Assembly: GCA_050084985.1 (NCBI GenBank)
Contig: JBITNC010000001.1
Span: 86,986,001 to 87,050,000 of the forward strand
Source: Nageia nagi
Taxonomy: Eukaryota; Plantae; Pinophyta
DNA: 64,000 nt
Reading direction: 5' to 3'
Shown here: positions 1,307-30,360 of the stretch, piece after piece
Layout: each line of letters begins with the position of its first letter
Numbering within the stretch: the stretch's first letter is position 1
Program-made: the position numbers and the translations under genes
Notes under the pieces: generated by a model
Seen by the model: only the letters and a program-made list of their open reading frames with translations
Databases searched by the model: none
Told to the model about the DNA's origin: nothing

Positions 1307-2770
1307 TGTTAACCTACAATGTTGTAATTATTACCAAAGGAGATTAAGACAATGTTATTATTGCCAATAATGCAAATAACTCATAGTAAGAAAGAATTTT
1401 TTATTGAAAAACATATTTTATTAGAGTTTTGGCAATATTTACATTATGAATTTAGAAGGACCCATTAAAACTAAATATAAATAAAATAATATTGTTCCAA
1501 CAAAATTAATTGGACATACTTTGAATTGAATGGATAGAATTCAAATCTCTCAATCAGAACACTTCCTATGGTTAATATGACTCTAATTCACCATGATGTA
1601 TGATTAACCACCACCGATAAGACATGTATTAAGCAAAATGAAGTTGTTTGATTTGTTTGCTATTCTGATGGAATTTGGTCTACTCCCCTTTTCCATATCT
1701 CCAACAAAATCAAATGATCTGCAAAATATTCAAAAATGGCTAAGCATAATGTTATTTTATTTAATTGCTATTCTAATAAAGTTTTTTTCATTACAATGCT
1801 ATGAATCCTTAAATGCTTATACATAGAAGGAAGAGCCTATGCAATCATAGAAAGTTTTATTTTGGGTGAATCTATTATGCATATGTAATATCTTGACATC
1901 ATACTTTTCTGTAATGCAAATTTCCTTTGTATTGTTGTATTTTTTAGGTACGAAGAAACCTTATGACATCAATGCTCTCTAAAGTGTGAATTTCCTTTGT
2001 ATTATTTTATTTTTAGGATACAAAGAAATATTGTAACATAAACATTCTTTGAAGTGTAAGGCTTATGTGAATCTCTTAGGTCCTATGTGAACAGAGACAA
2101 GCTTGTGTGGAGAGATACTGAAGGTGGTCGAAGGTGATATGCAATAGTAAACAAGCTTGTGTGAAGAAAAATGACCTTGTACAAACAATTCAAAGCTTAT
2201 GCAGAGAGAAAGAGCCTTATATAGAGACATAAAGTGTTATGCAAAAATCTAGAGTCTTATGCAGAGGATCAATATCTTATGCAGAGAATTATTTTTCCCA
2301 AATTGCAGTTATGAGAATGTTTGTAAAATAGCTATGAAGTTTTAATTGCTTTTGGAAACATGTATCGTAGCTCAAACATGATTGTATCTTCTTGAATTCT
2401 CAATTCTTATAACTAAAATTGATAAGATTTTAACCAAATGAAAAGAATAGAGAGGATAATTACAATGTGGATTAACTATAGAGAAAATAATATACACAAA
2501 ATATGGTGGCAAAGTATGTATAGTTGAATATAGTGAAAGATATAAAAATTCTAAGAGTAGAGAGTTGGAACATTTTTCTTGATGTATATAATATTTTTGA
2601 TATTTTGAAGGTGCAGTGTAATAATGTCAAGATATGTTAGTGTCCTGTTGATTAGGATTGTGTAATATATGCACCGCGAACAATCTTAACCAAAGTAAAT
2701 CAAGAACAGACTATGGTGACAGTCTGATCTCTAGAGAAGGCCAGTTCCTTATACATTAGGTGTAGGAGAA

Positions 2771-2895
2771 GTAACAAGAAAGAAAATAAAAAAGAGGAGA
2801 GTGCAAGGAATTTAAGCAAAAGGGTTAGGGTAGCAGGAAAGAAAATAAAAAAGAGTAGAGTGCGAGGAATTTAAGCAAAAAGGCTTAGGGTAACA
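2771..2895. repeat. ~59-bp tandem duplication in LTR (U5 side)
   Basis: GAAAGAAAATAAAAAAGAG.AGAGTGC.AGGAATTTAAGCAAAA occurs twice; also present at ~14573-14697. Confidence 0.85.
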
Positions 2896-3501
2896 AGAGA
2901 GAAAGCAAAGGTGGATCACTAGTTCAGCACGGGCTTTCACAGTGTGTGAAACCTTGGTTTGAATCTAGTGTAGCAGCTACGGTACAAGCTCTCACTCTCT
3001 AATAGTTTCCCAGCTTTACTCTACCATATAGCAGACATAGTTATACTAGAAGCTCATGATTATCATTCAAGAAACAAGCCAAAGCTGCCACAATGTAACC
3101 AAATTAAGAATGACAATTACAAGTGCTAGACAAGAAAGGTCAAGATGGTATCATATTACTGATAAAAACTACAGGTCTTCAAGAACAAATGTAAAGAGCA
3201 ATACTAGGGCTTTCGACCCTTCTTTCACTTTATTTTCATATACTTATACTGAAGCAACAACAGTTACAAGAATTGCAGAATAGAAATGTTTACAAAATGG
3301 CTTCAAGATTCTAGCCTTCTTTTAATTGATACTACCTACATACGCCACTTGGTAGAATATTACAAAACTAGGTAGATTGCAGATGATACGACTTCTTGAT
3401 GATTGTGATATGACTTCTCGCTATCCTCATCTCTTTTGGGATATTCTATTTACTGGCTCTGGCTATTTGATCTCTCTTTGCTGTTCTCATCTCTACATTT
3501 C

Positions 3502-4140
3502 GAAATGCTCTATTCACTGGCTCCAGCTATTTGATCACTCCTTGCTGACCTCATCACTTCCAAGACCCAGTTTCATTCAAAAATGTGAACATCACTCTCC
3601 CCATGATGTCATCTTCATACTTTTAGAATGCTCTACTCACTGGCTCCGACTATTCGATCACTCCTTGCTGACCTCATCACTTTCGAGACCCAGTTTCATT
3701 CAAAAATGTGAACATCGCTCTCCCCATGACATCATCTTCATACTTTTGGAATGCTCTACTCACCGGCTCCAACTATTCGATCACTCTTTGCTGACCTCAT
3801 CACTTTTGGGACCCAATTTCATTAAAAAATGTGAACATTATTCTCCCCATGATGTCATCTTCATACTTCTAGAATGCTCTACTCACTTTCTTTGGAACCT
3901 AGGCTTTTCCACAACTGAGCTTTTATCATTTCATTTCGAAATGCTTTATCTACTGACTCTGGCCCTTTTAATCATCGCTTGCTGACATCATCATCTTCGA
4001 AACTCGATCTTTACCAAAATGCAACTATCTTATCCTCTATGACATCATCATCTTATTCCAGAATGCTTTACTTATGGAACACTTAATTTATAGGCTCCGA
4101 CTTCTTTGATTATCTCTTGTTGACCTCATCACTTTTGGGA
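3502..4140. repeat. 123-bp tandem repeats in LTR U3 (3 full units plus degenerate ones; copy at ~15303-15950)
   Basis: AATGCTCTA unit starts at ~3502, 3625, 3748 and 3871 (period 123). Each unit carries TGACCTCA and TGATGTCA/TGACATCA. Confidence 0.92.
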
Positions 4141-4362
4141 CCCAGTTTTGGGTTAAGGCCTGAAATCGTTGATGTCATCTCTTTCAGAACCCAGGTTACT
4201 CAACATTAACTTTGAGGGGCTTTTCTTCTTTCATAATGAAGTAATTACTTTCAAAAACTATTCTTAAAACCCATTGTGATTATGCTTAGCTTATGTCACC
4301 TCCAGAAGTGATCATACTTTCAAAAAAACCTTGGAGTAGTGATTATGTATTAATATACATTT

Positions 4363-4380
4363 TGGTGACATCTGTGGGAA
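4363..4380 (+). promoter_or_regulatory. PBS-like tRNA-complementary site at the position where element C's PPT should be
   Basis: TGGTGACATCTGTGGGAA, 3 nt (TTT) from the LTR end. Element-sense reading is TCCCACAGATGTCACCA-AAA-TGTA, resembling plant tRNA-Leu(UAG) 3' end TCCCACAGCTGTCACCA (recalled); weaker match to tRNA-Lys(UUU). Confidence 0.75.
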
Positions 4381-4447
4381 AATTTCACCAATTACAAAGA
4401 AATTTTAGAACCCAGAATCTTATTTGAATGAATCAATGAATTAGACT

Positions 4448-7400
4448 TCAATTCTGTATACTCAAGAGTTGCTGAACCTTACTCCAGTCTGTGGAGATCC
4501 CAGAAAAATCCTTTAGCCTTGCATGGGCTAAAGCTGTAGTGTTCAAAATTTCATAAGACACATGAGCATATTTTATCAATAATTGCTGAATGTGAAAGCC
4601 ACCGTCTGCCAAAGAATCAAAGAATTTTATCAAATTGGTTTCATCAAATGAAACCAGGAGCATATCAACGTCATTACTGCTTTGAATCCTGCTCTGTAAA
4701 CCACTCAAAAACTCAGCTTCAGGGATAAGTGAACCGTCGCTTCTCCATAACTCTAGGATTTTGGATGCATTTAATCCCTGAATCTCTAACTTCATGCTTT
4801 CCATTTCTTGTGTTCGGCATGGGATATTACTCTTGATCTCCTGATAAACCCATTTCCCCCTCACTGGGTAGTCAATTGCTAACATGAGCTCCACTTAATC
4901 ACCGATATTATAAGACTGTAGCTTTTCATTCGAGAGGCTGTTCAACATCTTATTTGCTTGCTTGGCCTATTCTGAGATGGGATTCAAAATATTCTCACAT
5001 CTGGTGACCTCAACCTTGAGCCTTTTGAGCTCTGATAAACATGATTCTACATGGTCTCTCAGATGAATCAAATCTTTGATTTCCTGTGCCCTCAGCTCCG
5101 AAAATCATTTCTTTATATTTAACAAAAAGGATTTGTCTACCTTATTCACATTCATACTTAATTAGAGTTACGCTATGTTGGCATTCAAACCGCTAATCTT
5201 CGCTACTCTGGCTGCTATCTTAGCATCTCTCTGAGATATGATGGCATCTTTCTGGCTCAAAGTGTCTGCTATAGGAGCTATCACTAAACTAGCCTTCAAA
5301 ATTGATATATTATTTTTAGTAGCTTTCAATTTTAATTTTTGAGTGTCTAACTGCTACTTCACAGCTTCATGGGCCTTTTGCAACTTATTGTACTTGACCT
5401 CCAATTTTGTCAGCTCTGATATGTTGAGGTCTACTGTAGTTTGCAAGAGCTCATTTTTATCACTCCGAGATATGCTTCGTGTGTCGATTTTTACCCGAGT
5501 GTTCATAGAGGAGAGATCACTTTTCCCTTCTTGGGGGTCTTAGGCAATAGCCATTTCAATCACCTTATGCTTTAGATCCATTAAAGTTCGAAGCTTTACC
5601 AGATTATCTAGAACTGGGAGCTTCTTGATTTGCTTCTGCATCCATGCATCTCGTCCCTGTTTCATCTATTGGTACTGCTGCATGATGCCATCCATAGATA
5701 CTTATTACCCAGATATCATAATGAATGGAGATTCGATGCTCAACTCCTAAGAGGAGGAGGCCACGATCTGCTATGCTGGTGTCACAGGGCTAGCTTGACT
5801 GGGCCCAAGGACACTACTACTGGATGGATCCATGGTAGGAAGAGCTAGAATGGATGGAGGAGAGGATGATGGAGGTGGAGATGGCAAAGGTGATGATGGT
5901 ATTGTAGTGACGCTAATGATGGGGGAACTTGTGGGCTAGATGTGAGGGGAAGGGAGCTTTGCCATTGAATAGGTGGTGGTGGTGTTATGAGAGATTGGAT
6001 GGGTGAAGCTGGAATAGCTGCTAGAATTTGTGGAAGTGAACTTGGAATGGAAATGGGCATGGTAGAAATAGACAGAGTAGGAGTAAGAGAAATAGGGGAA
6101 GAAGGAGTAGAGAGTGTACCTGATGGAGTAGGGCTCCTTCTTCTTCTCTTTAGCGATGGTGGGAGCGGTGCCATCTCCTTTTGGACTTTTCTTTTAACAG
6201 TATACACCCTCCCGGGCCTCCTAATTGCTATTTCCATGGAAACCTCCCTGGTTCCTCCCTCGGGTTGCTCCTCCTAAGCTGATGCTTGGGACATTGCAGG
6301 TCCCTGCTCTCCCTCCTCATCACTATCATCCAAACCTTTGCTTGCAAGGATGTCTGTAGGATGTTCTATTCTCCACATCTCCTCAAATTCCTCATCTAAA
6401 TCAGAATCTAGAGGGGTATTCTAATTTTCAGACTCAATCCGGTACTGGGTAAAGGTAGCTATTTTTTCTTCACTCCATCTCTGATCTCTTAAGGTTTTCA
6501 AAGACTTTTTGGAGATGGAGTCTATTTTTGGGTCAAAATTTATCTTTTTGCTATAAAAACTCAACCATGGTGGTAATAAATCTTTAGTAATCAAGGTAGT
6601 GGGCATTACCTTATCTTCATGTTCTGGGTTTCACCACCTAAGTAGCTCCGACCTGGATTTAGCTCTGAAACTCAGGGGGTTGGGCTAGCCCCTCAACCTC
6701 TTACCAAAGATATCCTTCAGATCATATAACAAATACTGACTAAGTTCTTTCAATTTTAAATTCAATAATTTACCTTTTAATTATTCATTTTCTCCCCTGC
6801 TTTGAAGCACCAAGTCGTGCACTTTATGAGGAAGGGCATAAACTATCCTCTTCTTTGCTGCAGCTCCATATTTAGAATCTATATAATCCATTTATCTGGC
6901 GTATTCCATGCTGAAAACCTTATCTGTTACATGGACTGGTAGTAAGAAAGGAGCCCCAGAAAACCCATAAAGCCTGATGAAAGTCCCCTCCTCTGTGAAG
7001 AACCAGTCCCCAGTCTCTCCATGTGGCATCCAGAGGTAAAGCTTAGAAGCTATTGATAATCTTGGAACTACAAGGGTAAATAAACTCATTACGAGAACCA
7101 AAAAGCTTTCTACAAAGAAGTAATAATCCGTTGAAGACCTCACCTCCTCAGTCCATTGGTCCATCGGCTTCTGAGAACCTCTTTCATTAGTCCGAACCAA
7201 GGTTAAATTCTTAAAAACATCAGCATTCTGATGAATCATCATCCAAACAATGTGTGACACATATGTAAAATGGGATCCCTCACTAATCTTTTCTAGCTGT
7301 TCAGACATTCCATCTGAAAGGGCAATGGCCCAGTCATACATTATAGGAGAGTTTGGATGGGAAATCTGGTATACAATAGCTAATTTTGATGAAAAGACAT

Positions 7401-8040
7401 ACCTATCTATCTCTTTGACCGTTGCTATGGTCAACATGGATAATAATAATTACAGATGTGTAGAAAAATTGGAGAGCGGGAGCTCAGAATTGGGAAACTC
7501 CATAAATTTTACAGTCCTAGCTGCATTTTTATTTAGCCAGGCCGTGATATTTGCTCTTAGATTGGAACTGGGGGTCATATACCAATTAATGTGCACAAGG
7601 GAACACATAGGGGAGGGTGGATTAAAAGCCTTTACTACTGAAATGGAATCCAAATTTAAGATAGTTCTACCTTGCAAGTCTCTGACTATCCTGGTTGTAG
7701 GATCAAATGCCCCCTTTATAAACTCTATCAACTCAGGAGCAGGAAAGCATCTATGGGGGATGAAATACATGAGACCCGACCCCATTGGTGAATGTGCTAT
7801 ATGATTAAAATTGAAGTTTGGGCATTTACCTTCAGCGGTGCCCTTCAGGTTCTTATTTTGGGCTATTATTTCAGTATCCCACAATAATTCCATGGAATCT
7901 GTTATTTTCCTTATTGTCTTCACCAATGATCCTAAGCTCATTTCTGTTTGCTTATGCTACGCTTATCAACTCTTCTTGTCTCACTTATGTCACCCCTAAC
8001 CAACACTTTGCTTTACTCGGATTCTTCTGCTATATTCCAT
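4448..8040 (-). pseudogene. Disrupted ~3.6-kb extra ORF of element C downstream of integrase (same sense as pol), function unknown
   Basis: Collinear ORF pieces 7450-7941, 6892-7437, 6421-6606, 5845-6237 and 4448-4894: globular N-term, acidic stretch, basic KRRRR, Pro/Ser-rich linker, coiled-coil-like C-term. Confidence 0.75.
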
Positions 8041-8439
8041 AGCTCCTGGCAATGCGCAGTAGATACTAGTTTTGCAAATTTGTAAGCGAATACTTCTTAT
8101 GAATTTTGGAATTTAGGTATTTTTACGAGTAGTGCTCTTGGTACTTTTATAGCTCCTTTCGTTGATTGATGCACAATCTCTTGGAATGTGCACAATATCC
8201 TCACAGATGGTAGTATTAATAACCAATTTGATATTATGCACTCTTTTCGGGAACTCCAAGATTTGATTTTTTATACCCTTTTGGAAACTTCAATTCTACC
8301 AGCACAAAAGTATAACTACCACTAAGTTACTAATAAATAACTGACAACCATAACGATAACTTGAAATAAATGCAAACGGCACACTATTTACAATATGTGT
8401 ACAAAATCATATTTTTTCAAAAAAATCACTGTCCCGTGC

Positions 8440-9600
8440 TTGCGGTCTTATATCGCTTTAGGTACTATCCATTAACTGAAATCGGCAATTTGCACCCATT
8501 TAATTTTGCCAGCTCAAAGGCATTTTTCCCAACACATTTAGCTACTACATAGGGTTTGGACCACATGGATTCAAATTTTTTGTGTTTCCCCGGTTTAGCT
8601 CTATCCTCATCTCATTTCATTACTAAATCTCCTTCTCTGAAAGTATCTGGAGTTGATTTTTGACCATCAAACCATCTTTTTACTATTTCATTTCTTCTTT
8701 GGAGGTCTTCATATGATTGATTCCAGAGCTCTTCTAGATGCAACAGTTCATTCATCTGAACCTCGAGAGATTCAAAATCCTCACCATATTCCTGCAAAAC
8801 TTTTAAAACTGGAAGCTCGGAATGACTTGGTAATACCACCCTTTTACCGTATACCAATGTATATGGGCTGGTTTTAATGGCTAACTTTACTGTGATCCTA
8901 TCTGCCCATAATGCCCAATTGAGCTTTTCGTGCCAAGTTCGGGGATTATCCTCCACTTTTCTTTTGAGAATCCGAATCAAATTTTTGTTTGTGGACTCAA
9001 CCAAACCATTACCCTGGGGGTAATAATTTGAGGAAGTTTTCCAATAGATACCTAATCTCATAGCAAAATCAATAACTTCAGCTCTTACAAATGCTAAACC
9101 ATTATCCGAAATTATCATTTGAGGAACACCATACCTGGTAATTAACTTTTCTACAAATCTTAGAATAGTCTTCTGATTTGCCTCTTTTACCACCTTTGCT
9201 TCCACCCATCTGGTAAAAAAGTCTATGGCAGTAAGGATGAATTTGTGTCCAGAAGAGGAGTTTGGATTGATGACTCTGATAAAATCTAGCCCCCACTGTT
9301 GGAAGGGTTCTTCTACTTAGATTGGTTCCAATGGTAATGCCACATTTCTCTTTCTTCCCACATACCTCTGACACTTCTCATAATTTTGTGCCTTTGCAAA
9401 AGCCTCTTTGAACATAGTGGGCTAGTAATATCCCACCTGAATGATCTTACCCACTATCGTGTATTCGGAGTAATGACCTCCAGACTCTTCGGAATGAAAC
9501 TCTTCAATGAGTTTAGCTGACTTTGTCACCGATATGCATCTTAGCAAAATGCCATCATGATTTCTCCTATAAAGTATCTGATCTACCTTCGTGTAATTCT
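8440..9600 (-). pseudogene. Integrase of element C (disrupted)
   Basis: ORF 8612-9205: ITRYGVPQMIISDNG...SSNYYPQGNGLVESTNK...FREGDLV (DDE core), with the Zn-finger upstream. Confidence 0.93.
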
Positions 9601-9616
9601 AGGCGTGTATCTTGAA

Positions 9617-11200
9617 TCACCTTCTTTGGGATGCATTCATGTTTCCTGGCAGTTTTTTGGTCTCAAAATATTTGCTTAATTGCTCCATCCAATCCTTTAT
9701 CGTATCTCCGGGTATGGATTTCGGGGTTTCTTGTTCAACAAAGCATACCATCTCCTTTTTTGGTATCGTAGGTTTTGCAAGTTGCTCACAAAGTGCTCTT
9801 CCTTTTATGAGCTTGGTGGGCCGAATTTCCACATTGTATTTTAGAATTTTTGAAATCCACCTGGGTCTTCCTTCTCCCAATTCTCCCTACATAACATAAG
9901 ACCTAACATCTGGTTGTATAGTTAGAATCAAAATCCTGCTCTGAGAAATGTAATGTTTTAACTTACCAAGTGCTTTCACAATAGCTAGTACCTATTTTTC
10001 AATGAAAGTGTATTTTTCCTCACAACTGTTCATAGTCTGGCTGAAAAATGCGACTGGATATTCTTCATTTCTTTCGTACTTCTGGGTTAAAATGGCTACA
10101 ACACTAGTATCTGAACCATATGCGTACATAATAAATTCTTTGCTAAAATCTAGATTTCTCAGTACAGGAGCTTTTGTAATTGATACCTTAATTTTCTGAA
10201 AAGCTTCTTTACCTTCCTCAGTCCATACAAAAGGAGTATCTTTTTTTAGCATCCGGGTGATAGGTTTGATAATGTTTGAGAAATCCTGAATAAATCTTCC
10301 GACAAAGTTACTCTGACCCAGAAAAGATTGCAGAGACTTCTTATTAGATGGGAGAGACAAGTCATTTATAGCTTTAACTCTATCCGGATCAATAGCCCAT
10401 CCCTCTTTTGAAATGACATGGCCCAATAATTTACCCTCATCTACTGCGAAGATAGACTTCTTAGGATTTAGGGATATACCATACCTCTTACATTTGATGA
10501 AGGCTTGCTCCAGATGTTGAACATGCATGTTTCTATCGTGAGAGAAAATAGTAATATCATCAAGGTATACCAACAGACTCTTATTTACCAGCTCTCCAAA
10601 CGCATAATCCATAGCTCTCTGAAAGGTAGCCCCTTCATTGGATAGTCCAAACGACATTCTCTGAAAAGTAAATGTGCCCCATTTAGTTGTAAAAGCTATT
10701 TTGAACTGATCTTCATTCCGGACCCAAATCTAATTGTACCTGGAGAAACCATCTATCAAAGAGAACTTTTCAGCTCTGGCTATAGTATTTAGTATTTGTT
10801 CCATTGGAGGTAAGGGGTAATGATCCTTCAATGATACTCTATTCAAACCCCAGAAATCTACACACAATCTTATCTCACCATTTTTCTTCCGGATAGGCAC
10901 AAGATTGGCTACCCAAGTGGAATGCTTGATGGGATAAATTATCTAAGCCTTGTATAGTTTCAACACCTCCTACTTCATGGCAACTTCGATCTTGGGGTTT
11001 ACTGGTCTTTGTTTTTATCTTACTGGTTTAGCATCATCTATCAACTCAATTGTATGCTGTATCACTGATTTGTCAAAAACCTTTAAATCATCATAAGACC
11101 AAGCGATAACATCAACATACGTTTTGCATAACTGTACAATTTCCTGAATCTATTCCAGAGTATTAGATATACCAATTTTTAATGACTTACCTAGAAAAAC
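9617..11200 (-). pseudogene. Reverse transcriptase and degenerate native RNase H of element C
   Basis: MSFGLSNEGATFQRAM...LVYLDDITIF. The RH region reads EFIMYAYGSD, lacking the usual DAS catalytic Asp, as is typical of Tat elements. Confidence 0.93.
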
Positions 11201-11422
11201 TTCATGTTCTTTATAGTTATCTGGGTTTATATTCATACCCCTTCTTTTTACCTGGTCACTCCTGTCAAACAATCCTTCGAATGGAATCAAATCTTTAGGG
11301 AGTTTATTGTTATTTAGCTGAATTATGTCTTATTCCTAGAAAACTTTAGAGTCCTCTTCTCCTACTGCATGACATACCACTTGTAATAAAAATTGATTAA
11401 TTTGAGCTTCATCCTAGAAAAC

Positions 11423-12658
11423 CTACCAAAAGGAATCATTATCCGAAACTGATGGCCTAAAAATGAGCTGAACACCCTTTCTCTGGAACCAGTCATTTGT
11501 GGGATCAAAACTGGCTCCCATTTGTACTAATGCATCAACTTCTTGGTTGAATTTCCTTGGAATAGACTGAATATGCAATGCTTCGAAATGCTCAAACAGA
11601 TCCCAGACCTGATTCCTATAGGCTTTCAAATAATGATGTTTGATTGAACATTTACCTGTCACTTGTTTCACGATCAAATCTGAATCCCCTTTGATCTTTA
11701 GACACTGAATTTTCATTTTGATAGCTTGTTCTAGTCCTAGGCAAAGAGCTTCATATTTTGCCATGTTATTTGAACATAACCAGGTGAGTCTGAAAGAAAA
11801 TCTATGTACCTTACCAATTGGGTTGGTCAGGATAATCCCAGCTTCGGATCCATTTTTGGATCTTGCCCCATCAAAAGACATCTCCCACATTTCATTTCTC
11901 CTGAAATCTTCCCTTGTGAGTTTCGAGATGAAAGATTCTAGCTCTATTAAATAATAATTTCCAAACTCCACATTGTAGATGGTGTTGAGCATACTCATAC
12001 TACAAGGGTCTTCAGTTTGCAGCTCTTCCAGTAATTCATCTGATTCTTCCAATTCACCAAAGTTTACGCAAACCTCCTCCTTTTTCTCTACGTGAAAATC
12101 AAAAATTTCCTCATTATTCAGTATTACCCTCTTATTCCCACAAGGGATCAAATAATGGGTGTAATCCATTGCTAGATAACCCCCTATCTTAGCTGTAAAC
12201 TCTCTAGACAGACATAGCCCGAACAAAGGGGGCAGCTCAACAACTACAACTTCTTGAATAATAATTACAAAGGGACACTTATGTATTTTCAGCACTACAT
12301 CCTTGATTACTCCTACTATTTTGATAGGTGTGGAATCTAGTTGTAATACTCTGATGGATGTTCTTATCATAGGAAACCCCATTACATCGCACACTACTTT
12401 AGGCATCATAGTAGTAGCTGCCCCAGAATCAACCAAACAATTATGGAGTACATATCCTTCAATTTCCAGAGTCATGTAAAAAGCTGGAGGTTTGTTCTTT
12501 CCCGTCCCCAGATATTTTGATGTTTCAAAAAGATTAAGCACTCTTTCCATTCCTTCATTCAATGCTATAAGAGATGTTTTCAGTAAATCAATTTGTTTAG
12601 GAATTTTTAGAGCTTCAAACAAGGACACTCTCGCTAGAGTTCTCTTTAGCTCTGCCAT
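11423..12658 (-). pseudogene. Aspartic protease followed by archaeal-type RNase H (aRH) of element C
   Basis: CLVDSGAATTMM (protease), then WEMSFDGARSKNGSEAGIIL...SNNMAKYEAL...IKGDSDLIVKQV...PRKFNQEVDAL (RNase HI), all upstream of RT. Confidence 0.93.
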
Positions 12659-12724
12659 AATGTTGAACTCTAGGATAGTCGGAGGTTCACCAATTTTGTT
12701 TCTGAATCTGTCAATAAATTTTCC

Positions 12725-14299
12725 CTAAAGCTGTAGAGTATCATCTTTTCTCTGGTGCTTGGTAAGTGAAGGGAACCTTAACCTCCAGAGATTTTGATCA
12801 CTGGCTTTGGGTGTTGGTTTGGTTTCTGGAAATGGGAATTTTTGGGAAACCATTTCCTTTTCTAGGATCTTTTCCTTAGAACCATGAACTACATCTTGCC
12901 TTTTAGGAAACACTACTCCGAAACTCTTTTGGGGTTCAACTTTTATTTCCGGAATGCTGGAGACTAGGGGACTTTTTCCTGATCTTGTTTCCATAGCAAA
13001 AACTCCTATATCTACCGGTACAAAATTCATCAGGTTCACATTTTGGTTCATGTCATTAGCTACATCGGGTAGAGGAATACCCCCACTTCTTGATAGATAC
13101 TCTTGGTACTGATAAACAAGGCATGTGGTTTGTTCATAAGCATCATTGCAGGCCAAACACAAACCTGTGGCTGACCCAAAAGGGGAAGCTTGGCCTACAT
13201 CCTCGTTTAACACATGCTGAGCTTTTTCTATAGCAGGATAAGGATATCTTCTTGCATTATTTTATCTGCTTAGAATGGTAATCTAGTTTGCCATATTTCT
13301 ACACAAGTTTCAAAGTTCCTGAATCTCCGTCGATGAAGCTACCCCTTGATTCATATTAGGTTGATAAGGGGTTGGTAAAGCTAAGGGAGCTCTAGGGACT
13401 AGCAAGGTTGATGGCCACTCTTGAACAGGGGTGGGGATACTGGCCAGTGGTGGAGCCAAACTAATTGCTTGAGGTCTCAAAATTTGCTATTGGGTGGTTA
13501 TTGGAAAATAAGGCATTGACATGTGACTTGGCAATTTTCCAACTACAATAAGATAGGATTCAGCATATACTGCTTGTCTATAGACCTTTGAGAAAGTATT
13601 TACTCCAGAATTTTGGATTTGTAGAGAGAGATCCGGAGGAAAGGCTCTCAGGTAATACATTAAGGCTTGAAATTGTTGAGGCCTGACTGGCATTGGGACT
13701 CTCATCCAAGTTTTTTGGAATCTAATATTGAAATCAGGGATATTTTTTTGCTCATATCCTTTGATTGAAGTGAACTGTGTTAACAAGGAAAAAGGATCTC
13801 CTAATTCATTAAATTCCAAGATAAAGGGCTCTACCAGTTGAGCCCAAGTGGTTATAGATCCATTAGGAAGGCCCCTGTACCAACATAGGACCTTTCCCTT
13901 AAAAGACTGAGCCAGTAATCTCACCATGACATCTTCATGCTAGATATTGTGAATCTTAGCTAGGCCAACTACATCAACACAATGCTCATAAGCCATTTTC
14001 TCTGAAGTCGCATCAAACTCCAGAAGGGTTTTGAAAACATTTGCTGGGATGTCATGCAACACCGCCAGGGCTATTGGTACCCCATTGTCCCATTCTGGAT
14101 AAATATTCTGAGCTAGATTAGCCATTTTAGGAGAGGTATTTCTAGTGTGAAGATTGGATGATTCTAGCTTGGTAAAGGATTTTAGGGAGCTGATACTATT
14201 CAGAGACTTAGACTTGATCAGCGTCTTTCTCTTAGGAGTATCTAACATTCTAAAATCCAGTGCTTCTTTTGCTGCTCTAGTTTTAGATCTTGTCCACAT
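12725..14299 (-). pseudogene. gag of element C (fragmented)
   Basis: ORFs 13940-14299, 13487-13927 (RLLAQSFKGKVLCWYRGLPNGSITTWAQL, retrotransposon gag) and 12725-13213 (CLACNDAYEQTTC knuckle remnant). Confidence 0.88.
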
Positions 14300-14390
14300 A
14301 AACTCTAGGTTGCAAAAGAAAGTGACAGGTTCAAAAGCACATATAATATTTATAAATAATTTGCTTTAATACATACCATAGATAGTGCTT

Positions 14391-14404
14391 CAGCAGAGTC
14401 GCCA
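14391..14404 (-). promoter_or_regulatory. Second PBS-like site, tRNA-Arg(ACG)-like
   Basis: Minus strand TGGCGACTCTGCTG, the first 14 nt of the Ogre-type PBS TGGCGACTCTGCTGGGGA. Confidence 0.7.
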
Positions 14405-14418
14405 ATAAGTTTCTTCGT

Positions 14419-14436
14419 GTCCCATCAGGTGTGCCA
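14419..14436 (-). promoter_or_regulatory. Primer binding site, tRNA-Arg(UCU)-like
   Basis: Minus strand TGGCACACCTGATGGGAC versus recalled TGGCACACCCGGTGGGAC (2 transitions); 11 nt from the 5' LTR. Confidence 0.8.
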
Positions 14437-14447
14437 AAAAGAAATAC

Positions 14448-16160
14448 TGTTGATTAGGAGTGTGTAATATATGCACCGTGAACAATCTTAACCAAAGTAA
14501 ATCAAGAATAGACTATGGTAACAGTCTGATCTCCGGAGAAGGCCGGTTCCTTATACATTGGGTGTAGGAGAAGTAATAGGAAAGAAAATAAAAAGGAGTA
14601 GAGTGCAAGGAATTTAAGAAAAAGGGTTAGGGTAGCAGGAAAGAAAATAAAAAAGAGTAGAGTGCAAGGAATTTAAGCAAAAAGGCTTAGGGTAACAAGA
14701 GAGAAAGCAAAGGTGGATCACTAGTTCAGCGTGGGCTTTCACAGTGTGTGAAACCTTGGTCTGAATCTAGTGTAGCATATACGGTACAAGCTCTCACTCT
14801 CTAATAGTTTCCCAGCTTTACTCTACCATATAGCAAACATAGTTATACTAGCAGCTCACGATTATCATTCAGGAAATAAGCCAAAGCTGCCACGATGTAA
14901 CAAATTAAGAATGACAATTACAAGTGCTAGATAAGAAAGGTCAAGATGGTATCATATTACTGATAAAAACTACATGTCTTCGAGAACAAATGTAAAGAGC
15001 AATACTAGGGCTTTCGACCCTTCTTTCATTTTATTTTCATATACTTATACTGAAGCAACAACAGTTATAAGAATTGCAGAATAGAAATGTTTACAAAACG
15101 GCTTCAAGATTCTAGCCTTCTTTTAACTGATACTACCTACATATGCCACTTGGTAGAATATTACAAAACTGGGTAGATTGCAGATGATACGGCTTCTTGA
15201 TGACTGTGATCTGACTTCTTGCTATCCTCATCTCTTTTGGGATATTTTATTTACTGGCTTCGACTATTTGATCTCTCTTTGCTATTCTCATCTCTACATT
15301 CTAGAATGCTCTATTCATTGGCTCTGACTATTTGATCACTCCTTGCTGACCTCATCACTTTTGGCACCCAATTTCATTAAAAAATGTGAAGATCGTTCTC
15401 CCCATGACATCATCTTCATACTTTCAGAATGCTCTACTCACTGGCTCTGGCTATTCGATCACTCCTTGCTGACCTCATCACTTCTGGGACCTGGTTTCAT
15501 TAAAAAATGTGAACATTGCTCTCCTTGTGACATCATATTCATACTTCTAGAATGCTCTACTCACCGGCTCTAGCTATTTGATCACTCTTTGCTGACCTCA
15601 TCACTTCTGGGACCCGATTTCATTCAAAAATGTGAACATTATTCTCCCCGTGATGTCATCTTCATACTTTCAGAATGCTCTACTCACTTTCTCTGGAACC
15701 TGGGCTTTTCCACAACTAAGCTTTTATCATTTCATTCCGGAATGCTTTATCTACTGACTCCAGCCCTTTTAATCACTGCTTGCTGACCTCATCATCTCTG
15801 GAACCCAATCTTTACCAAAATGCGACTATCTTATCCTCTATGATGTCATCATCTTATTCCGGAATGCTTTACTTTTGGAACACTTAATTTACGGGCTCTG
15901 ACTTCTTCGATTATCTCTTGCTGACCTCATCACTTTCGGGACCTAGTTTCGGGTTAAGCCCTGAAATTGCTGATGTCATCTCTTTTGGAACCCGGGTTAC
16001 TCAACATTAACTTCGAGGGGCTTTTCTTCTTTCATAATGAAGCAATTACTTTCGAAAATTGTTCTTAAAACCCATTGTGATTATGCTTAGCTTACGTCAC
16101 CTTCGTAAGTGATCATACTTTCAAAAAAACCTTGGAGTAGTGATTATGTATTAATATACA
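14448..16160 (-). repeat. 5' LTR of element C
   Basis: Direct repeat of 2646-4359, upstream of gag on the minus strand. Confidence 0.97.
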
Positions 16161-16787
16161 TGTCCTATAGTTGAAAAAGGATCTACAAACATATGAGTTG
16201 AAAGGCATTAAGGTGAAAATGTATGAGTAGACTACCATTGATAATAAAATGATATTAGATTGGAAATGAGAGTAGAAAAATGGCTATAGAGATTGATTGC
16301 ATATTTCTTATAGAGATAATTGGATGATAATTTTGATGAGCTAAAGATCAGAGAAGGATTTGTGAATAGAGAAGACATTTTTATATCAAACCTTTAAACA
16401 AGATTTGAAGTCCAAGTTGGTGCTTGGCAAGAGGGGTTGGTGCTCCTTGCAATGGGTGTTGTAGATCTTAGGAGTTGGTGCTCCTTTTAGTTGAAGCTAA
16501 TAAATTATAGGAGTTAGTGATCCTTCTAGTTGATGTTGGTAAACTAAGTGTAAAGATGGTGCTTTGCAATGGCTAGATTTGGACCATGATCTAAGCAGTC
16601 TTATCTGAAGATGTAGCTACATTTGTGAATATCATTATATCTTATGTTGTGTGATGCTCTTTTATGGTGTATTCTTTACTTAGTTTTATATTTGTGCTAT
16701 TATGTTTTACATGGTAAAGTTACAAATTTAAGTTTAAATAAATCACACTGATTCACCCCCCCTCTCAGTGTCACTTGGAGTTCAACA

Positions 16788-18099: not shown

Positions 18100-19294
18100 T
18101 GTGAACACCTCAAAACCCTAACACCTAAAACATTCAAGCCATCTATGAGCACTTTAAAGATTTTAAGTTGTTCAATCCTATCTTTCTTATGTTGTGATAT
18201 AAAAATAATGATAAAAGCATGGTTTAGAAATGGTCCTTAGTCTTCAATGATGTTAAATAGTGCTCAAATTTGAAAGGAAACAATAATGATTAAAAGGGAT
18301 CTCAAATCATAAGTCCTTTGGATCTTATGATTTTTCAAAATGAGGTAGAACCCCAACTCTACAAGGTTGTAGATCCCCTTAATCCATAGTCAAATGGAAA
18401 TTCATAAAGATATCAATGCCTATAATGCAAATGTATTAAAGATTGATAAAGATCAATGCTATATTCTTGAACAAGGATAATTGATAATTGTAGATGATAA
18501 AACTATGCTAAATTGAAAAATGATATTAAATATTTGAAAAAATGCAATGTGTATTCAAAGATCCAATTAGATGACAATGTATGACAAGAATGGTTACAAA
18601 TTCAAAGCTAAGAATGGTAGATCCAAGCTAAGAATGCAACTAAATCAATAAATATGTGACAACCATAGGGTTTGGACCTTATCCTTAACCCTAGGATGTA
18701 ATTAGCGTAGACCAATGCCTATATATCACACAAATGCATGCATATTTTTAAATAAAGGATACAAGTTTTAATCAACAATGATTTGATATGCCAAATATGT
18801 AAATGATAGTGAAAGCCAATATTAATGTCTCAAGCAAACCCCAAATAGTCAAAGAGTACCTCAATCCATGTAAAATGGAGAACTATACTCAAAGAGTGAA
18901 TATGAATGCTCTTAACGTGATGTATCCTTCATAATGATCTCATAAAGCTTAGGTAAAAGAGCTAGAAAATATGCAAAGTCACAAAGTTCATATGTGTCAG
19001 AGTGTAAAAATCAAAGAAGCTCAAAATTTGTGCCATTTGAATTTTATAATGCTAAGTCAAAATCATCTAGGTGACTATGATGTCTCATGGATTTTTCAAG
19101 TGAATTACAAGTCATTTGGACAACTGGAACTAAAGGTGTTAGCAAAAATATAAGGTCAAGACTAAGTTGATTAGTTTAGTCAAAGAAACTATAAAATATA
19201 CATCAGTCCAACATGATAATATAACACATGATATATGTCAAAATATCAATGTAACCCATTCAACAAAGCAAGATGCATTTTTAAGTTATTTATA
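18100..19294 (-). repeat. 3' LTR of element D
   Basis: Aligns with ~36274-37458 (e.g. CCATCTATGAGCACTT...AAGATTTTAAGTTGTTCAAT); adjacent to PPT AAAAAGGGGAAAC on the minus strand. Confidence 0.9.
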
Positions 19295-19664
19295 GTTTCC
19301 CCTTTTTGTGATGAGCTTCGAACCTATGAGAAGCTTAGTACAAAAATATGTAAAATGATAATTGATAATGATAAATGATAAATTATGATAAAATGACCAG
19401 GATGAGAGCTAGTTTCAGTGCATGACATGCCGTATAAGATCATCCTAATCACTCAACACTAATATGATTTCAGACATAACAAGTCACATAAGACATAATT
19501 GAGCACCATGAGAATCTAATGAAGTCTGGTTTTGGCACATGATAGGTTGTATAGGATGGGATTGGATCTCATTATAATGGACCTATGAAAAAAGTTTGAC
19601 ATGTAGATGAAGTAGCCATTGGACAATAAAGAAAAAATTTAATCTAATTTAAACTAAACTAATC

Positions 19665-20100
19665 TAAGCGTTGAAAGGGAAATGATATCTACTTTGCCCT
19701 AATATTTGAAGAGAATGACCTTTGCTTTGCTCCAACAGCTGAAGGGTGTTTGACTCTACTTTTTGCCAACATTCAAAGGGAAATGATCATAGGTATGTAG
19801 ACCTACCAAGCATGAGACCATAACATTTAGGAATATGACACTTGCATAATAGTGACTAAGCTGAGCATGATGACATCTGAATATGTTGATCTCCAATCAA
19901 TCATGTCATGCTAAGCTAACAATTCTAAACATGGTGATGTTAGAATGTGTTTATTACCAATCCACCATGATGAAGTGCAATGATCTTTTTAAACATGATG
20001 ATGTTATAATATGATGATTGCCAATCCATCATGCCAAACTAATAATCATCTAGTAAACATTCATAATGCAAAAAGCATTGACCATGCATCCAACATGCCT
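19665..20100. repeat. Degenerate tandem arrays (~35 bp and ~62 bp) in the 3' UTR of element D
   Basis: Recurring GAA.GG.AATGA..CT.CTTTG units, then AAACATGATGATGTT...CCAATCCA.CATG units. Confidence 0.6.
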
Positions 20101-21539
20101 CTTATGAAGTTCATGATGAACCTACTAAAAATCAAAAGTTTGATTAGTTTGAAATTATGTGTGAATCTCTCCCCCTCAAATGGGAAGGTGTGATGGATGA
20201 AAAAATAAGATGCTTGACTATTTGACTAAATGAAGCAAGAAATGATGATCATGATCAAAGATTTACAAAGTGTGATATGGACTAAGCAAATCATCCTGAT
20301 GACTACAGGTCATCTAGATGACTAGGAAAAATCAAGTCATATAGGTGATTAGGGATCATTCAGATGATCCAATTAGGGAAAAAAAGGAAAAAATAAAAAG
20401 TAAAATCAACGATTTGGTTATCTTATGTTGAATTGATACTTTTGTTGACCATTATTACTAAGCGACTGTGTTGTTTGAGATAATGACTTGCGATGACCTG
20501 CAAGGGAAGCAACTAGTGGAGAAAGTGACATGAATTACCTTTGTTTGACCAATGCACAATGACCAAAGGACCTCAACATGGTAGTTATGGGTCTAGGGGG
20601 AGGGCCACTTGGAGGGGATGAGCCATAGCCAAAAATGATTAGTGCCTAACCCTCAAAACCCTATTTTTTAGTTATTTACTATGTGTGTGTGTTGTGATTA
20701 AATGGTAGGTTTGTTGTTGGTTTACAAGCTTAAAAGAGTGGTTTTAAACAATGACATATGATTTAATTGTTGTATTGAATATAAACCAAAAATGGATTGT
20801 ATTGTTTAGTGTAAGTTAGACACTTGCAGTTTAAACTTGGTGAGTAACATAAGTTAAAATCCTACAAAACATAAGACAATGAAATATGATAATGAATATC
20901 ATAAAAAAAATCATATAGCCAAGGTGTTAATAAAGCTCCTTTATAGCAACTATAAATCACAGGATCCACACACTATCAAGCTTAACACTAGGAAATAAAT
21001 ATAGTAATAAATGACTCCACCCATATTGAACACACAACATGGCCACAACCATTGATTGTGTAATTAATTAAACAAGGCAAGAAAGTTTGTTAAATTTGAT
21101 AGATGTTGACACATTATAGTATTAGAATGTATAAAGTTTGCATGTTATTTTTTATTTTTTGTTTTATGATATACATGTTATTTTTTTTTCATTTTTAAGA
21201 CTCTACAAATCATCTTAATCTTGAATGATCCAATTTGGGGGTCTCCCATGTGAAGGACTATTAGAAAAATCATTTGGATAAATTACCAAGTCATTTGAAA
21301 CCTAGATGACTAGGGTAAACCTAGTTGCCCTTCATGAAGATAATTTTTACCAAAAGAGAACACACTAAAAAATGAAAAATGCAAACTTAGATAAAATTCA
21401 AATATGCATCCTAGGGGACACATAGGACTAACATAGACATAGAGACCACTAACTTTAGAAATAGATATAATAAATTAACTAAAAAACATTGACATCTCAA
21501 TATTTATGCTAAATGAATGTCCAACATAAGTTTCAACCT

Positions 21540-23780
21540 CTATGGAAAGAGGTACAGGCAATGCTGACATAGATAAAATGTGATTGGCTAGAGGTTTGGG
21601 GGCTCATAGGAGTCACAAGGATTCTCCCCATCATAGAATACACCTCATATATGATTACAATCAGGGAGTGATTTGATCCAAACTAATGCATATTCCTATT
21701 CCTGATAGGGAAGATGATAGTGATGCTAGAGGATGACTATTGTATATTCAAACTAGTGCTCAAGGATGACCAGATCATAGTAGCCATCAATAGGGTGATC
21801 ATCAGACCATATGTAGGAAAAAAATTTAGGACATGGGATCTTGTCAATGGTGGGGTACTCATTGACCCACTAATATTATCACTAGAGCCACCTTGAACAA
21901 AGAGAGGTGATGGCTATGCTACTTATATCATTATTTATACTACTTGATTCCTTAAGACCTAGGTTACCTTGGAACATGTTTGAGATTGTTAATCAGATGG
22001 TCCAGGAGAGGATAGTTTTTGCATGGGGCCCAGTGCTACTAGTGCAAACCTACAAGGAGCTAGCAGTAGCAGCTAGAGGAAGGTGAGGAGTTAGCACTAC
22101 ATTACTACTCCAAGTGTGAGCTAAAGATGATGGGGGACATCCCCCAAATGGTAGGTGTAGAGCTTCCATGCACTCATCACTAGGAGCATGAGTAGTAGAG
22201 GTAAAGGAGACACCCTCATGAGGGAAACATTGAATGGTACAAGGCCATGCTAATGATCCTACAATAATAAGATGTTATCTACCAACCATACTAGGGAAGG
22301 TTGATATGGGTAGAGAATGCAGTGAAACTGGCTCATGCCTATAGGGCATGACATGTCAAGGACCACCACATCAGGGACATGGAGATGTTTAGTTTTAAGA
22401 GAGTCCAACACTAGCACAAGTTGGTATAGGATGTCCTTCTTGACCTAATGCTGTATGGGAGAGTGGATGGGGAGGCACTAATGTGGTTAAGACTAACATA
22501 TGTAGAGCTCAACATATAACCAGATGCACCAATGGATAGATCAGTAATAGATGATGTGAGCACCATGCCTGATTATGAATCATAGTGGGCACCATAGTGG
22601 GATCTACTCCCAATATGGCTGATCATGTAGACATAATGAGGTACCCCATCCATAGACCATTGGATCCCAAAGGGGGTAGTTGGCCTAAGGGTTAAGGAGG
22701 AAGTGATCAAGGAGGTTAGAGAGGAGGATATGAATGGTGAGTATGATGCCTAGGGTGAGGGGAATGATGAGGGTGATGGTGCCCCTAAGGATGTTGAGGG
22801 ACATAATTCCTAAGAGATGGACATAGAATTCCTAGAGCTACCATCTCAAGAGGAGGTGGAGAGGCCTAGGATCCCATGATTCCATCTTGGAGAGCTCAAC
22901 CCTCATATGGTTAATCTACAGGTATAGAAGGATGGATTACAAGCCCAGGTGAAAGAGCTATAGGAATAGTTAATCGTAGGGAAGGTAACGAGGAGTGCAA
23001 TAGTGGTAGCTTAGGCGATAGTTGAGGTAATACTTGTAGTGGTAGTAGGGTTGATTAACATCCTTTAGAGTTAGCTGGAGGTAGATCATACCATAAGGTC
23101 AATAGTAGAGGGATGCGGAGAGGGGATGCAAGGAGACATGCAAATCCTCCTTATTTTTATGGCAATGGCCAAGGAGAGAGATTCACTTAAAGCATAGGTA
23201 GAGGTGGGTGTGGGTCCCAATGTTGAGGTTAGCACAAAGATAGAGGTGCTACTAATAGGCCTTGATGATAAGGTAGGGATACTTATAGATGTAGCAATCT
23301 AGATAGACCCATTAGAGATAAGGCCCTTGTCAACATTGAGTGACATGTCTAGATAATTAAGCTAGGCATTGGATGAGGTGGATAGGGCCATCATGAGGGC
23401 ATTGGCATGGAAGAGATAGCTAATAGAGGTAGGATTAGTCCCTATTGATCTAGAGGATTCCAAGACCACCTCCATAGCTTATATTATGTCCCAAAACATG
23501 GTGAGGAGCCATTGTAGTGAGGGGCACTTAGTTTGATAGCTAACACCATATAAAGTAATGACTATAAAGACCACTACAAAAAGGGCTAAGATAAAAGAAG
23601 AGATGGGGAGAGGGACTGGTGGGCTTGTTAGGTGAGCCATATCACAAGTGGAAGGATGATTCTTTAGATCATCCCCTTAATTTGGGTAGAGTGGCATGGT
23701 TAGAGAGAGCAACCTGATAGGGGAGCATATAGAGGGGTAGGGGGAGATGAGTACTCCCCTAATCAATGTCGATGATAGGA
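21540..23780 (+). pseudogene. Antisense extra ORF of element D with plant mobile domain (PMD, aminotransferase-like) remnant
   Basis: Manual translation: IRE*FDPN*CIFLFLIGKMIVMLEDDYCIFKL (cf. ERW.PET.TFHLP.GEMTVTLEDV..IL.L), FAWGPVLLVQTYKEL, LLLQV*A; then acidic and coiled-coil-like remnants. Confidence 0.75.
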
Positions 23781-26519
23781 TGATCCCACACCTTAAAGGT
23801 GTGGATTTTGATAGGATTATGTACTATTTTTGGCTCTAGAGCATAGGAAATGATGTATATGTATTTTGAAATGGACCTCTTATATTTAGACATGTATATG
23901 TATATTGACCTAGATGATATATATATATATATATGATTCCTATTTTGACTTCATATGTGTACTTAATGCTATGAATGAATGCATGTATGTACTTTTATTT
24001 AGTTTACATGAGATGGATGCAAATTTACACTATGGATGTATGCAACCCCATATAGACCTAAGTATACATAAAATGAACCTTAAAAGGAACATAAAATGAA
24101 ATTTTGGAAGACACTTAAAATGGATACTATTAAAAGACTTATAAATTAACTTAAAATGAATGCTAAAATGGATTTGAAATGAACTAAAATGAACCTTTAA
24201 AATAACCCATAAAATACCTAAGAAAAATTTAAAATGAACGTAAAGGACCACTTAAAATGGACCTAAAAGGACTTAAAATGAACCTGCATGTTTAAACACA
24301 TCATAGGGAAAATGAACTTGTATGTCTAAATAGACAAGGAAGAACAAAGAGATAAACTCAAAGTAATGACAAATGATTGATTACAAGCAATAACAATAAG
24401 GACAATAAATGATAATTATAAAATAATAAGACCAAATGCCAAAACATACCCAAAAGATATAACATGATAGACATTAGAAAAAGATATAAAAAGACCCACC
24501 TAAAACATAAATGACCTAAATAATAAGCTAACAACATAGTATGGTAATAAACACAACTCAAAATCAATAAAAATAAGCCAAAATGCTATTAGAATGTCGA
24601 TCATGATAAACATACCATTAAGACACCCCCTGAAATACTCGATTTATGTCGATCATGATAAACACAATGATAAACATGATCAAAACATTACCACTACATG
24701 ACCAAATTGGGCCAAAATTGAACCAAAGTAAAATGATACTTTTGAAAAGTGAAATATTACAAAATTCAATGGACCATAACAAATGACCACATTGAATATT
24801 AGATGAACTATCTTGATGATATGATAGATGGTTATACGGTCTAAATGCAGGATTAAATGGTTCAAAAAATGGAGGTCATTTTACCTACTTTTGAAAGCAA
24901 CATAGAAGGCTACCCAAAGGAGGGTGACAACCTTTTAGTGCTCATTGAAAGTGTGTTGTTACTAGTAGCTCCAAGAATGACTTGCAAAAATTGATCAAAT
25001 GATGAACCTAGGCTATGAAACTTGACATGACAATTGTGTTTACATTGATGAAGGACTAGGAAAAGATAGATCTAAAAATGGATCTTATTTGATGCATCAA
25101 AATGTAAAATCAAATATCCTATTTTTACAAGGGTCAGATTTCATGACATTCATCCCTAAAATAAAATGGGTGATGAAATGACTTGAAATAGTACAAAATG
25201 AAATGATAGGATTGAATGAGGTGAAATATAATCAAATTATAGATCAACATGACAATGTGACCTAGGTTGATATGGGAAGGTGTTCACTCACGTAGGAAGG
25301 AAGGTCTAACTTCAAACTCTAAGTAAATAGGTAAGAAGTAATCAAAAATGAATGAAATTGACTTCCTAATGACACTTGAATGAGTGTGAAACTAGTGAAC
25401 ATGATCATTAGTCAAATCTTCAACATTATACTTAGTTATAAAGGACAAACAAAACTAAATTTTGATAAAATGATAAATGATGAAACATGACAAAAATGCA
25501 CAAAATGCAACAAAAGCATAAATGCTAATGCAAAGGACCTCAAAATCATCATAATAGAGATAAATAAAGATAACACAAAGGCCCACATTACTAAATTGAC
25601 ATAATTCCATCAAGGTCACAAGTCACAAAAGGTCATAGAATATTTACCTTAGAACACATGATAGTTTGCAGACTATGATCAATCCCAAGGGAATGATTTG
25701 TCAAGAAAACTCAATATGGTGACTGAGACCCAATTGGTTGTATCCTCATCAAGAATTCATGGATCATGTATGGTGATAATTGACATAGATAGATACGTGA
25801 AAATGCTAGGGATGATGTCTTTGCATAAGTAGAATACAAAGGACTCAACACAACAAAGAAGATAAAGGAAAGACAACAAGGCAATATGAATAAACTAAAT
25901 TGCCAATGAAAGCAAACAAATTGGTCCCACTAAGTTATTTTGGGGTTGACTTCCATGCATGTCCAATACTATTCTTTCTTTTTCATAGAATAAAAATAAT
26001 GTTTAATAGCCCCAACTCAGATGAGGATAAAGAGTAGGGAAACAAAAATAATAAATGCAAGATGATGATAAGAGATAGAAACAACAAAATGATACAAGGA
26101 CTAACATGTGATGGAGAAATGAGTGACTGGTGGCCTTCATGCACCCAAAAATGGTAGGATGACACTAAAAAGTGGAGAACCAAGTAAGTATCAACTCCCA
26201 ACAATATGATCAAAAAGAAAATAAAAGGGTGAAATAAAAGAATTGATACACACACCTAGGCTCAAAGAAATGGTTGCACGTAAACCATCCCTTGAAACCT
26301 AGGGTAGATAAACGAGTGACTAGAATAGGATAACATACTATGGAAAATAAAACCAAGATGACAAAGATAAGATGCAAGCATAAATGAACTAAGCTGAAAA
26401 ATGAAAGACAAATACATAATAATAGACAAGGGCAAATTGAGTGAAGTAAACTAAATGTAGAATGGACAAAGATGGAGGATATTAATCGGCTCCATCTCTT
26501 CACAACCCTCTAGATATGC

Positions 26520-30224: not shown

Positions 30225-30360
30225 AGCCATAAAACCCTAGATCATGCTTATCTCATCTGGATTGAAATGGAATGGAAAAAGCATGAACCATTCCCTGCTC
30301 ATATTTTTCTAGGTTATACCCTTGTCACTTCCATTTGGCAAAGAGTTTACATAGCAATTC
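30225..30360 (-). pseudogene. G-patch domain remnant between protease and RT of element D
   Basis: KLFAKWK*QGYNLEKYEQGMV...HDLGF resembles the G-patch consensus. Confidence 0.55.

Follow-up and report, generated by a model that had tools for sequence, protein, structure and literature searches.

The DNA analysed here (the window) is a stretch of 64,000 nt of the Nageia nagi genome (assembly GCA_050084985.1, contig JBITNC010000001.1, positions 86,986,001-87,050,000 of the forward strand). When its first 20 kb are compared with themselves, one pair of direct repeats appears, the LTRs of a single insertion of 13,515 bp at 2646-16160, designated element C. The two LTRs are 92.4% identical over 1717 aligned columns, and on the plus strand both start with TGTTGATTAGG and end with TTAATATACA (TG...CA termini). 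No large inverted duplication was found within element C. All the long reading frames of the element are on the minus strand, and its parts are named in the sense of these genes:

2641..2645, no strand: left copy of the target site duplication (TSD) TGTCC; the same 5 bases abut both outer LTR ends
2646..4359, minus strand: 3' LTR (gene sense), with its start TGTATATTAATACA... at 4359 and its end ...CTAATCAACA at 2646
4451..7956, minus strand (gene sense): ORF fragments lacking Pfam matches, in the region that separates the integrase from the 3' LTR
8615..13939, minus strand: coding region for gag, protease (DSGA), aRNase H, RT/RNase H and integrase, interrupted by stops and frameshifts
in 8615-9316, minus strand: rve (integrase), Pfam
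in 9995-10729, minus strand: RVT_1 and RT_RNaseH_2, Pfam
in ORF 11426-12724, minus strand: RVT_3 (archaeal-type RNase H), Pfam, E = 9e-19
13490-13939, minus strand: Retrotrans_gag, Pfam
14448..16160, minus strand: 5' LTR (gene sense), the repeat of 2646-4359
16161..16165, no strand: right copy of the TSD TGTCC, adjoining the outer LTR end

An earlier note on this DNA had described element C in the same terms, and rightly so: the borders are exact, with the TSD TGTCC, and all the domains are on the minus strand. The protease motif LVDSGAA is found in the same ORF as RVT_3 (11426-12724), upstream of the RT (9995-10729), so that the element combines the LTR/TSD structure and an RT preceding the integrase with an extra RVT_3 domain, the aRH, between protease and RT. 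The order protease, aRH, RT, RH, integrase is that of the TatI and TatII clades according to Neumann et al. (2019, PMC6317226). From domain order and structure we have assigned element C to the Tat lineage of Ty3/gypsy, as an element of TatI/TatII type. With these elements (PMC6317226; Ustyantsev et al. 2015, PMC4408406) it shares the TG...CA LTRs, the 5-bp TSD, the length of 13.5 kb, the arrangement gag-PROT-aRH-RT-RH-INT and the sense ORFs located 3' of the integrase. The latter form a sense extra-ORF region of ~3.5 kb (4451-7956, minus strand), like that reported for one quarter of TatII elements. The last ORF fragment stops 91 nt before the 3' LTR.

It is at this 3' end that element C departs from what would be expected of an LTR retrotransposon. 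In gene sense, the internal region ends with ...TTTTCCCACAGATGTCACCA-AAA|TGTATATT (over a longer stretch, ...GGTGAAATTTTCCCACAGATGTCACCA-AAA followed by the TGTATATT of the 3' LTR). On the plus strand, the left LTR ends in ...ATACA at 4359 and is followed by TTT (4360-4362) and then by TGGTGACATCTGTGGGA (4363-4379). Three parts can be told apart here:

4360..4362, minus strand: 3-nt spacer AAA (gene sense), from the CCA to the TG of the 3' LTR; TAA, likewise 3 nt, in the related copy L010 (see below)
4363..4379, minus strand: 17-mer resembling a tRNA 3' end, TCCCACAGATGTCACCA (gene sense; TGGTGACATCTGTGGGA on the plus strand), occupying the position of the polypurine tract (PPT)
4380..4415, minus strand: remainder of the conserved block, including the hairpin arm TTGGTGA (gene sense); aligns well with L010, ~74%

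The last ORF fragment stops 71 nt before the 17-mer, and with 3 or fewer mismatches the 17-mer has no second occurrence in the window. A purine run of about 8 nt or more just upstream of the 3' LTR, as a PPT would require, is found neither in the window nor in L010. The last 30 nt before the 3' LTR (gene sense) are 53% purine, with a longest purine run of 4 (5 in the last 30 nt of L010). No purine run of at least 10 nt lies within ~490 nt of the 3' LTR in either copy, the nearest one in the window being located at 4853-4862, ~490 nt from the LTR. The purine tract that the earlier note had found missing is therefore indeed absent. The PBS-like layout that it had seen on the other strand, LTR-TTT-TGGTGACATCTGTGGGA, is there as well, a TGG being found within 0-5 nt of the LTR on the plus strand both in the window (LTR-TTT-TGGTGAC...) and in L010 (LTR-TTA-TGGTAAC...). 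The motif starts as the complement of CCA (plus strand) and its length is about that of the 18-nt tRNA stretch used at a PBS. Only the strand complementary to the RNA gives it the form of a PBS; on the genomic RNA it is located upstream of the 3' LTR and not downstream of the 5' LTR.

Since this mirror-image layout looks canonical on the plus strand (LTR-TTT-PBS at the left, AAAAAGAAATAC-LTR at the right), the polarity of the LTR itself was tested. If the replicated RNA were antisense to the genes, the 17-mer would be nothing but an ordinary PBS; the mirror-image layout is real, as is the conservation of the A-rich 11-mer that precedes the right LTR. We have compared eight LTR copies belonging to six subfamilies. 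The 650-750 nt at the gene-sense 3' end of the LTR could be aligned, the other half being too diverged, and this pattern is readily interpreted as the usual variable U3 followed by a conserved R-U5, in gene sense. The conserved signals in the 5' LTR and the leader are the following:

14387..14404, minus strand: second TGG-led leader motif TGGCGACTCTGCTGAAGC (gene sense), conserved as TTGG(T/C)GACTCTG... and partly like the complement of the 3' motif
14419..14436, minus strand: putative 5' PBS TGGCACACCTGATGGGAC (gene sense), TGGCA.......TGGGAC, in six subfamilies
14437..14447, minus strand: T-rich 11-nt spacer GTATTTCTTTT (gene sense) from the 5' LTR to the PBS, 10-12 nt in all six subfamilies
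15041..15052 (5' LTR) and 3240-3251 (3' LTR), minus strand: TATA-like box CAGTATAAGTAT, invariant in the 8 LTR copies of 6 subfamilies

The TATA-like box is located ~600 nt before the gene-sense end of the LTR, as expected for a TATA box, and it is the only invariant one; a TATA-like stretch near the plus-strand start of the LTR is not conserved among the eight copies. The copies of the putative 5' PBS differ mainly by changes of the CG-to-TG or CG-to-CA type in the middle. The T-rich spacer is also found at L002:8275-8285, L019:4177-4187, L006:3553-3562 and L013 ~5960-5975. The leader thus carries two conserved TGG-led motifs in tandem (14387-14436, minus strand). Because of the invariant TATA-like box and the conserved gene-sense leader, gene sense is the replicative sense, and the 17-mer is truly at the PPT position and not a mis-oriented ordinary PBS. 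With the variable half of the LTR where a gene-sense U3 belongs, and the gene-sense PBS kept in six subfamilies, an antisense genome appears very improbable; we know of no retroelement that copies RNA antisense to its genes. Judging from the leader sequences, element C has an ordinary minus-strand PBS, although an unusually distant one, 10-12 nt (and not 0-5 nt) inside the 5' LTR. The distance, together with the conservation of the spacer, implies an unusually long trimming of the U5 end by the integrase.

A second Tat-like element in the window (18112-37449, minus strand) provides a comparison within the same genome. It is older than element C, with LTRs (~18112-19285 and 36280-37449) that are ~84% identical. 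A TGG-led PBS-like sequence, TGGCAATCATGGTGGGAC, is located 4 nt inward of the 5' LTR, and ~12 nt inward of the 3' LTR there is an ordinary purine run, AAAAAGGGGAAA. Its domains are in the order RT, aRH, integrase, different from that of element C, and two aRH arrangements thus coexist in one genome. Near the start of the window, at 408-635 on the plus strand, there is part of the RT of another gypsy-like element, 39% identical to that of element C.

A metagenome scan with the protease-aRH alignment gave 19 related loci, among which only L010 reaches the 3' junction (in L002 and L003 the upstream LTR start falls in 711 nt of contig outside the locus), and the 3' junctions read base by base are those of the window and of L010 (n=2). 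L010, a metagenome contig ~77% identical to element C, has TCCCCTAGAAGTTACCA-TAA|TGTATATT at the homologous site and no purine tract. Over L010:8178-8197 it reads AAAATTTTCCCCTAGAAGTTACCA-TAA, followed by TGTATATTCATATA, the homologue of the 17-mer being L010:8178-8194. This site retains TCCC at its start and ACCA at its end, as well as the 3-nt spacer and the beginning of the LTR, and 4/17 positions differ (13/17 identical, 76%, against 77% for the surrounding 300 nt). Between the two copies, the last ~55 nt before the LTR make up a conserved island, and the preceding ~45 nt align poorly. The motif could have been private to the window copy, with an ordinary PPT in its sisters, an outcome that the earlier note had considered fatal to its proposal. 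This is not the case, as L010 has a CCA-ended 17-mer and a 3-nt spacer in the place of a PPT.

A broader view of the family comes from four DNA sequencing runs, including two air metagenomes, whose Logan contigs could be aligned in their thousands to 3700-5200 at 80% likeness. The family of element C is very abundant in the four runs, and contig depth is unbroken across the LTR/internal junction; in run X1 the summed depth is ~2,200-4,000 along the internal part and ~3,500-6,700 over the final 200 nt of the LTR. None of the best-supported 40 of 269 differences, which are mostly sites where the family majority departs from the window copy, is located at 4295-4441, and for this reason we take the 17-mer of the window to be the majority form in the family; within these best 40 of 269, the sisters do not depart from the motif either. 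Six contigs of one run match the window through the end of the LTR and the motif as far as 4389, beyond which they run into other sequence, as expected if the first 30 nt inside the LTR were a cis signal common to derivatives.

Some further observations concern the distribution and structure of the family. It is present in several air metagenomes (runs X2, X3 and X6-X9), as would be expected if the host were wind-pollinated and its pollen contributed DNA to air samples. No relatives came up in viral contigs, whether these were scanned with the last ORF or with the protease-aRH alignment, and a search for the LTR start in contigs of bacterial and archaeal genomes found nothing. The variable (U3) half of both LTRs contains 123-bp tandem repeats (3498-3886 and 15299-15687), over which contig depth is 5-20x that of the internal region. 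Copies of the family are also nested in opposite orientation (L005, L013/L015 and L016), for example a 5' LTR with 100 nt of leader inside another copy. A reversed LTR in L013/L015, a candidate for another 3' junction, is in fact a truncated copy of the 5' LTR together with its leader.

How closely the 17-mer is related to tRNA has to be judged within a very short stretch. We take the 3' end of plant tRNA-Leu(UAG) to be TCCCACAGCTGTCA followed by CCA, which would match the 17-mer at 16/17 positions; the 3' end of tRNA-Lys(UUU) presumably matches at 15/18. The layout of the motif (the T-stem strand TCCCAC, seven acceptor bases, the discriminator A and CCA) is that of known 18-nt 3' tRNA fragments. 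The resemblance is confined to 17 nt, the span that a PBS would cover. No match to tRNA or TLS was obtained from Rfam for 4250-4650 at E up to 10, nor is there a full cloverleaf-like fold ending in CCA, of the kind seen in the 3' tRNA-like structures of plant RNA viruses and retroplasmids. With ARAGORN, tRNA genes were predicted neither in the window nor in any of the 19 related loci. Searching bacterial and archaeal genomes with the tRNA-type pattern gave 120 bacterial matches attributable to chance, 0 of them inside a predicted tRNA. In the literature, the motif strings matched unrelated PCR primers; the one outside trace, at best an indirect one, is a PCR primer containing TGACGGCTGTGGGATTTGAA, which is the complement of a T-loop plus TCCCACAGCCGTCA, in a paper on an Allium satellite (PMC13116747). 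Whether the 17-mer exceeds what chance would give has to be judged from its PBS-like layout and its presence in sister copies, the match to tRNA being a presumed one.

The reading that we rank first, although tentatively and with considerable doubt, is that the 17-mer is a second, inverted PBS, at which a host tRNA primes the plus strand. In such a scheme the genomic RNA, devoid of a PPT, would carry a 17-nt copy of a tRNA 3' end, CCA included, 3 nt before U3. Once the minus strand had been made and RNase H had digested the RNA, this strand would expose a sequence with the form and the spacing of a PBS. A host tRNA (Leu-like, on the assumption made above) could then anneal there and be extended via AAA into U3-R-U5, giving the plus-strand strong-stop DNA. 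Plus-strand synthesis would start at the 17-mer and the primer would be the tRNA, not a fragment of the genomic RNA. Priming of the minus strand would take place elsewhere, at the conserved PBS located 11 nt inward of the 5' LTR, and the integrase would trim 3 nt and 11 nt past the terminal CA at the two ends. Since the conserved 11-nt 5' spacer means that the integrase must anyway remove long extensions, a precisely cut PPT would be less needed, and the loss of the PPT may be linked both to the new position of the archaeal-type RNase H and to the trimming of long extensions by the integrase at the two DNA ends.

Priming by a host tRNA has been placed first because no other model explains at once why the resemblance stops at 17 nt, why it ends in CCA and why it lies 3 nt from the LTR. 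The exact borders with their TSD, the minus-strand genes and the lack of a PPT argue in its favour, as do the CCA, the 3 nt and the TGTATATT recurring in a 77%-identical subfamily, the gene-sense TATA-like box, the abundance of the family, the long 5' spacer and the ordinary purine run of the second Tat-like element. Against it, the match to tRNA is a presumed one, and the family majority retains one mismatch to the assumed end of tRNA-Leu(UAG). The L010 site, different at 4/17 positions and no better conserved than its flanks, would pair poorly with the same tRNA, the primer being paired over only 4 consecutive bases at its 3' end; moreover, a tRNA paired to DNA is itself a substrate of RNase H. 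The same anatomy would result if the primer were a piece of the genomic RNA, an oligoribonucleotide ending in ...GUCACCA that stays annealed to the minus-strand DNA when RNase H cuts after CCA, as it does where tRNA joins DNA, and that acts as a sequence-defined substitute for the PPT. Such a primer would need no second tRNA in the particle, the better conservation of the ~55 nt next to the LTR than of the 45 nt before them fits it well, and the extra archaeal-type RNase H could have altered primer selection (RNase H and the preservation of the PPT are discussed in PMC4408406). Nothing in it, however, requires a likeness to a tRNA end, a stop at 17 nt or a terminal CCA, and the mimic differs from the partner of the element's own 5' PBS (14/18 with gaps). 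The earlier note had offered, as its own alternative, a local hairpin leaving a tRNA-like RNA primer. Its arms do exist, TTGGTGA at 4362-4368 and TCACCAA at 4385-4391, but the fold (-9.1 kcal/mol, z = -1.7) is not significant and is absent from L010, and we have discarded the hairpin as an explanation. A primer cut from the genomic RNA seems to us unlikely on balance, and we give the same standing, second after the host tRNA, to the 17-mer being a functionless relic, for instance of an old template switch or recombination involving a tRNA- or PBS-derived piece, with a plus-strand priming that is not visible in the sequence. The conservation of the motif at 13/17, no better than that of the surrounding 300 nt (77%), is what a relic would show. 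It is harder to reconcile with a very abundant family in which most copies have the motif (going by the best 40 of 269 differences), with the 3-nt spacing and the CCA kept in both subfamilies, and with the conserved island of the last ~55 nt.

Next in our ranking, and less likely still, comes a role of the 17-mer in RNA cyclisation: it would pair at long range with the leader, around the PBS, as the 3' half of a 5'-3' interaction similar to CYC5-CYC3 of yeast Ty1, in which case the plus-strand primer would be another, imprecise one. The motif would then be tRNA-like only through its complementarity to PBS-type sequences. Interactions between 5' and 3' ends are known in Ty1 and Ty3 (PMC7969010, PMC5371799). 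When the 200-nt leader is paired with the terminal 45 nt, the best duplex (-22.4 kcal/mol) does join the motif to the spacer and PBS, but shuffled sequences gave -18.0 +/- 3.2 and 48/500 of them were as good. By local alignment with six leaders, the complement of the motif resembles the second TGG-led leader motif of L016 (the best score, with 0/300 shuffles as good); the window's own leader is a weak match (16/300 shuffles as good), and the 3' end of L010 is similar to none of the six. A cyclisation pair of the Ty1 kind may thus exist but is not supported by these comparisons, and it would leave the missing purine tract unexplained.

The site shares features with several known systems. The PBS types reported for TatII elements are tRNA-Asp, tRNA-Asn or undetermined (PMC6317226; PMC4408406), and the supplementary tables of PMC6317226 contain PBS types and no PBS sequences. 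In the text searched, the TatII/TatI papers are silent on a missing PPT or a tRNA-like 3' end such as those of element C, and a PBS or PPT at the 3' end is not a subject of the Tat and aRH papers. A full-text literature search gave no report of tRNA-primed plus strands or of Tat elements devoid of a PPT, in agreement with the earlier note, whose author knew of no such description. With PPT-primed synthesis (e.g. Ty3, PMC5371799) the site shares its position directly upstream of U3, where the 3' end of the primer sets the left DNA end; element C differs in lacking the purine tract and in having the PBS form on minus-strand DNA. The start as the complement of CCA, the ~17-18 nt and the 3 nt from the LTR edge are those of the tRNA PBS used for the minus strand, but the 17-mer is located at the 3' end of the internal region and on the opposite strand, so that a tRNA could bind only the minus-strand DNA and would prime the plus strand. 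The bipartite PBS of Ty3 and CYC5-CYC3 of Ty1 (PMC5371799, PMC7969010) also rely on a cis-acting sequence beside the 3' LTR, one related to the 5' tRNA/PBS region. The 3' segment of Ty3 is, however, complementary to the T and D arms of the tRNA, whereas the 17-mer of element C has tRNA sense, being the sense of the 3' strand of the acceptor and T-stem; unlike in Ty1 and Ty3, complementarity to the leader is not significant. A defined, non-purine primer is used by hepadnaviruses, whose plus strand is primed by a translocated RNA oligomer chosen by sequence identity. These belong to another class of elements, and have neither LTRs nor any likeness to tRNA at this site.

To our knowledge, an RNase H-resistant polypurine tract is regarded as the plus-strand primer of all retroviruses and LTR retrotransposons, and a PPT is demanded by annotation tools. 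The antisense reading of element C looks canonical, so annotation based on PBS and PPT would give such elements the wrong strand. It is conceivable, though we would not count on it, that host tRNAs prime both strands of element C, which would make it the first LTR retroelement known to give up the PPT. For the mapping of cDNA ends, the 17-mer provides a concrete sequence. If our reading is true, a successful family in which a tRNA-type site replaces the PPT would mean that the second primer is evolvable, and the choice of primer would be tied to the repeated replacements of RNase H in the Tat lineage and in retroviruses.
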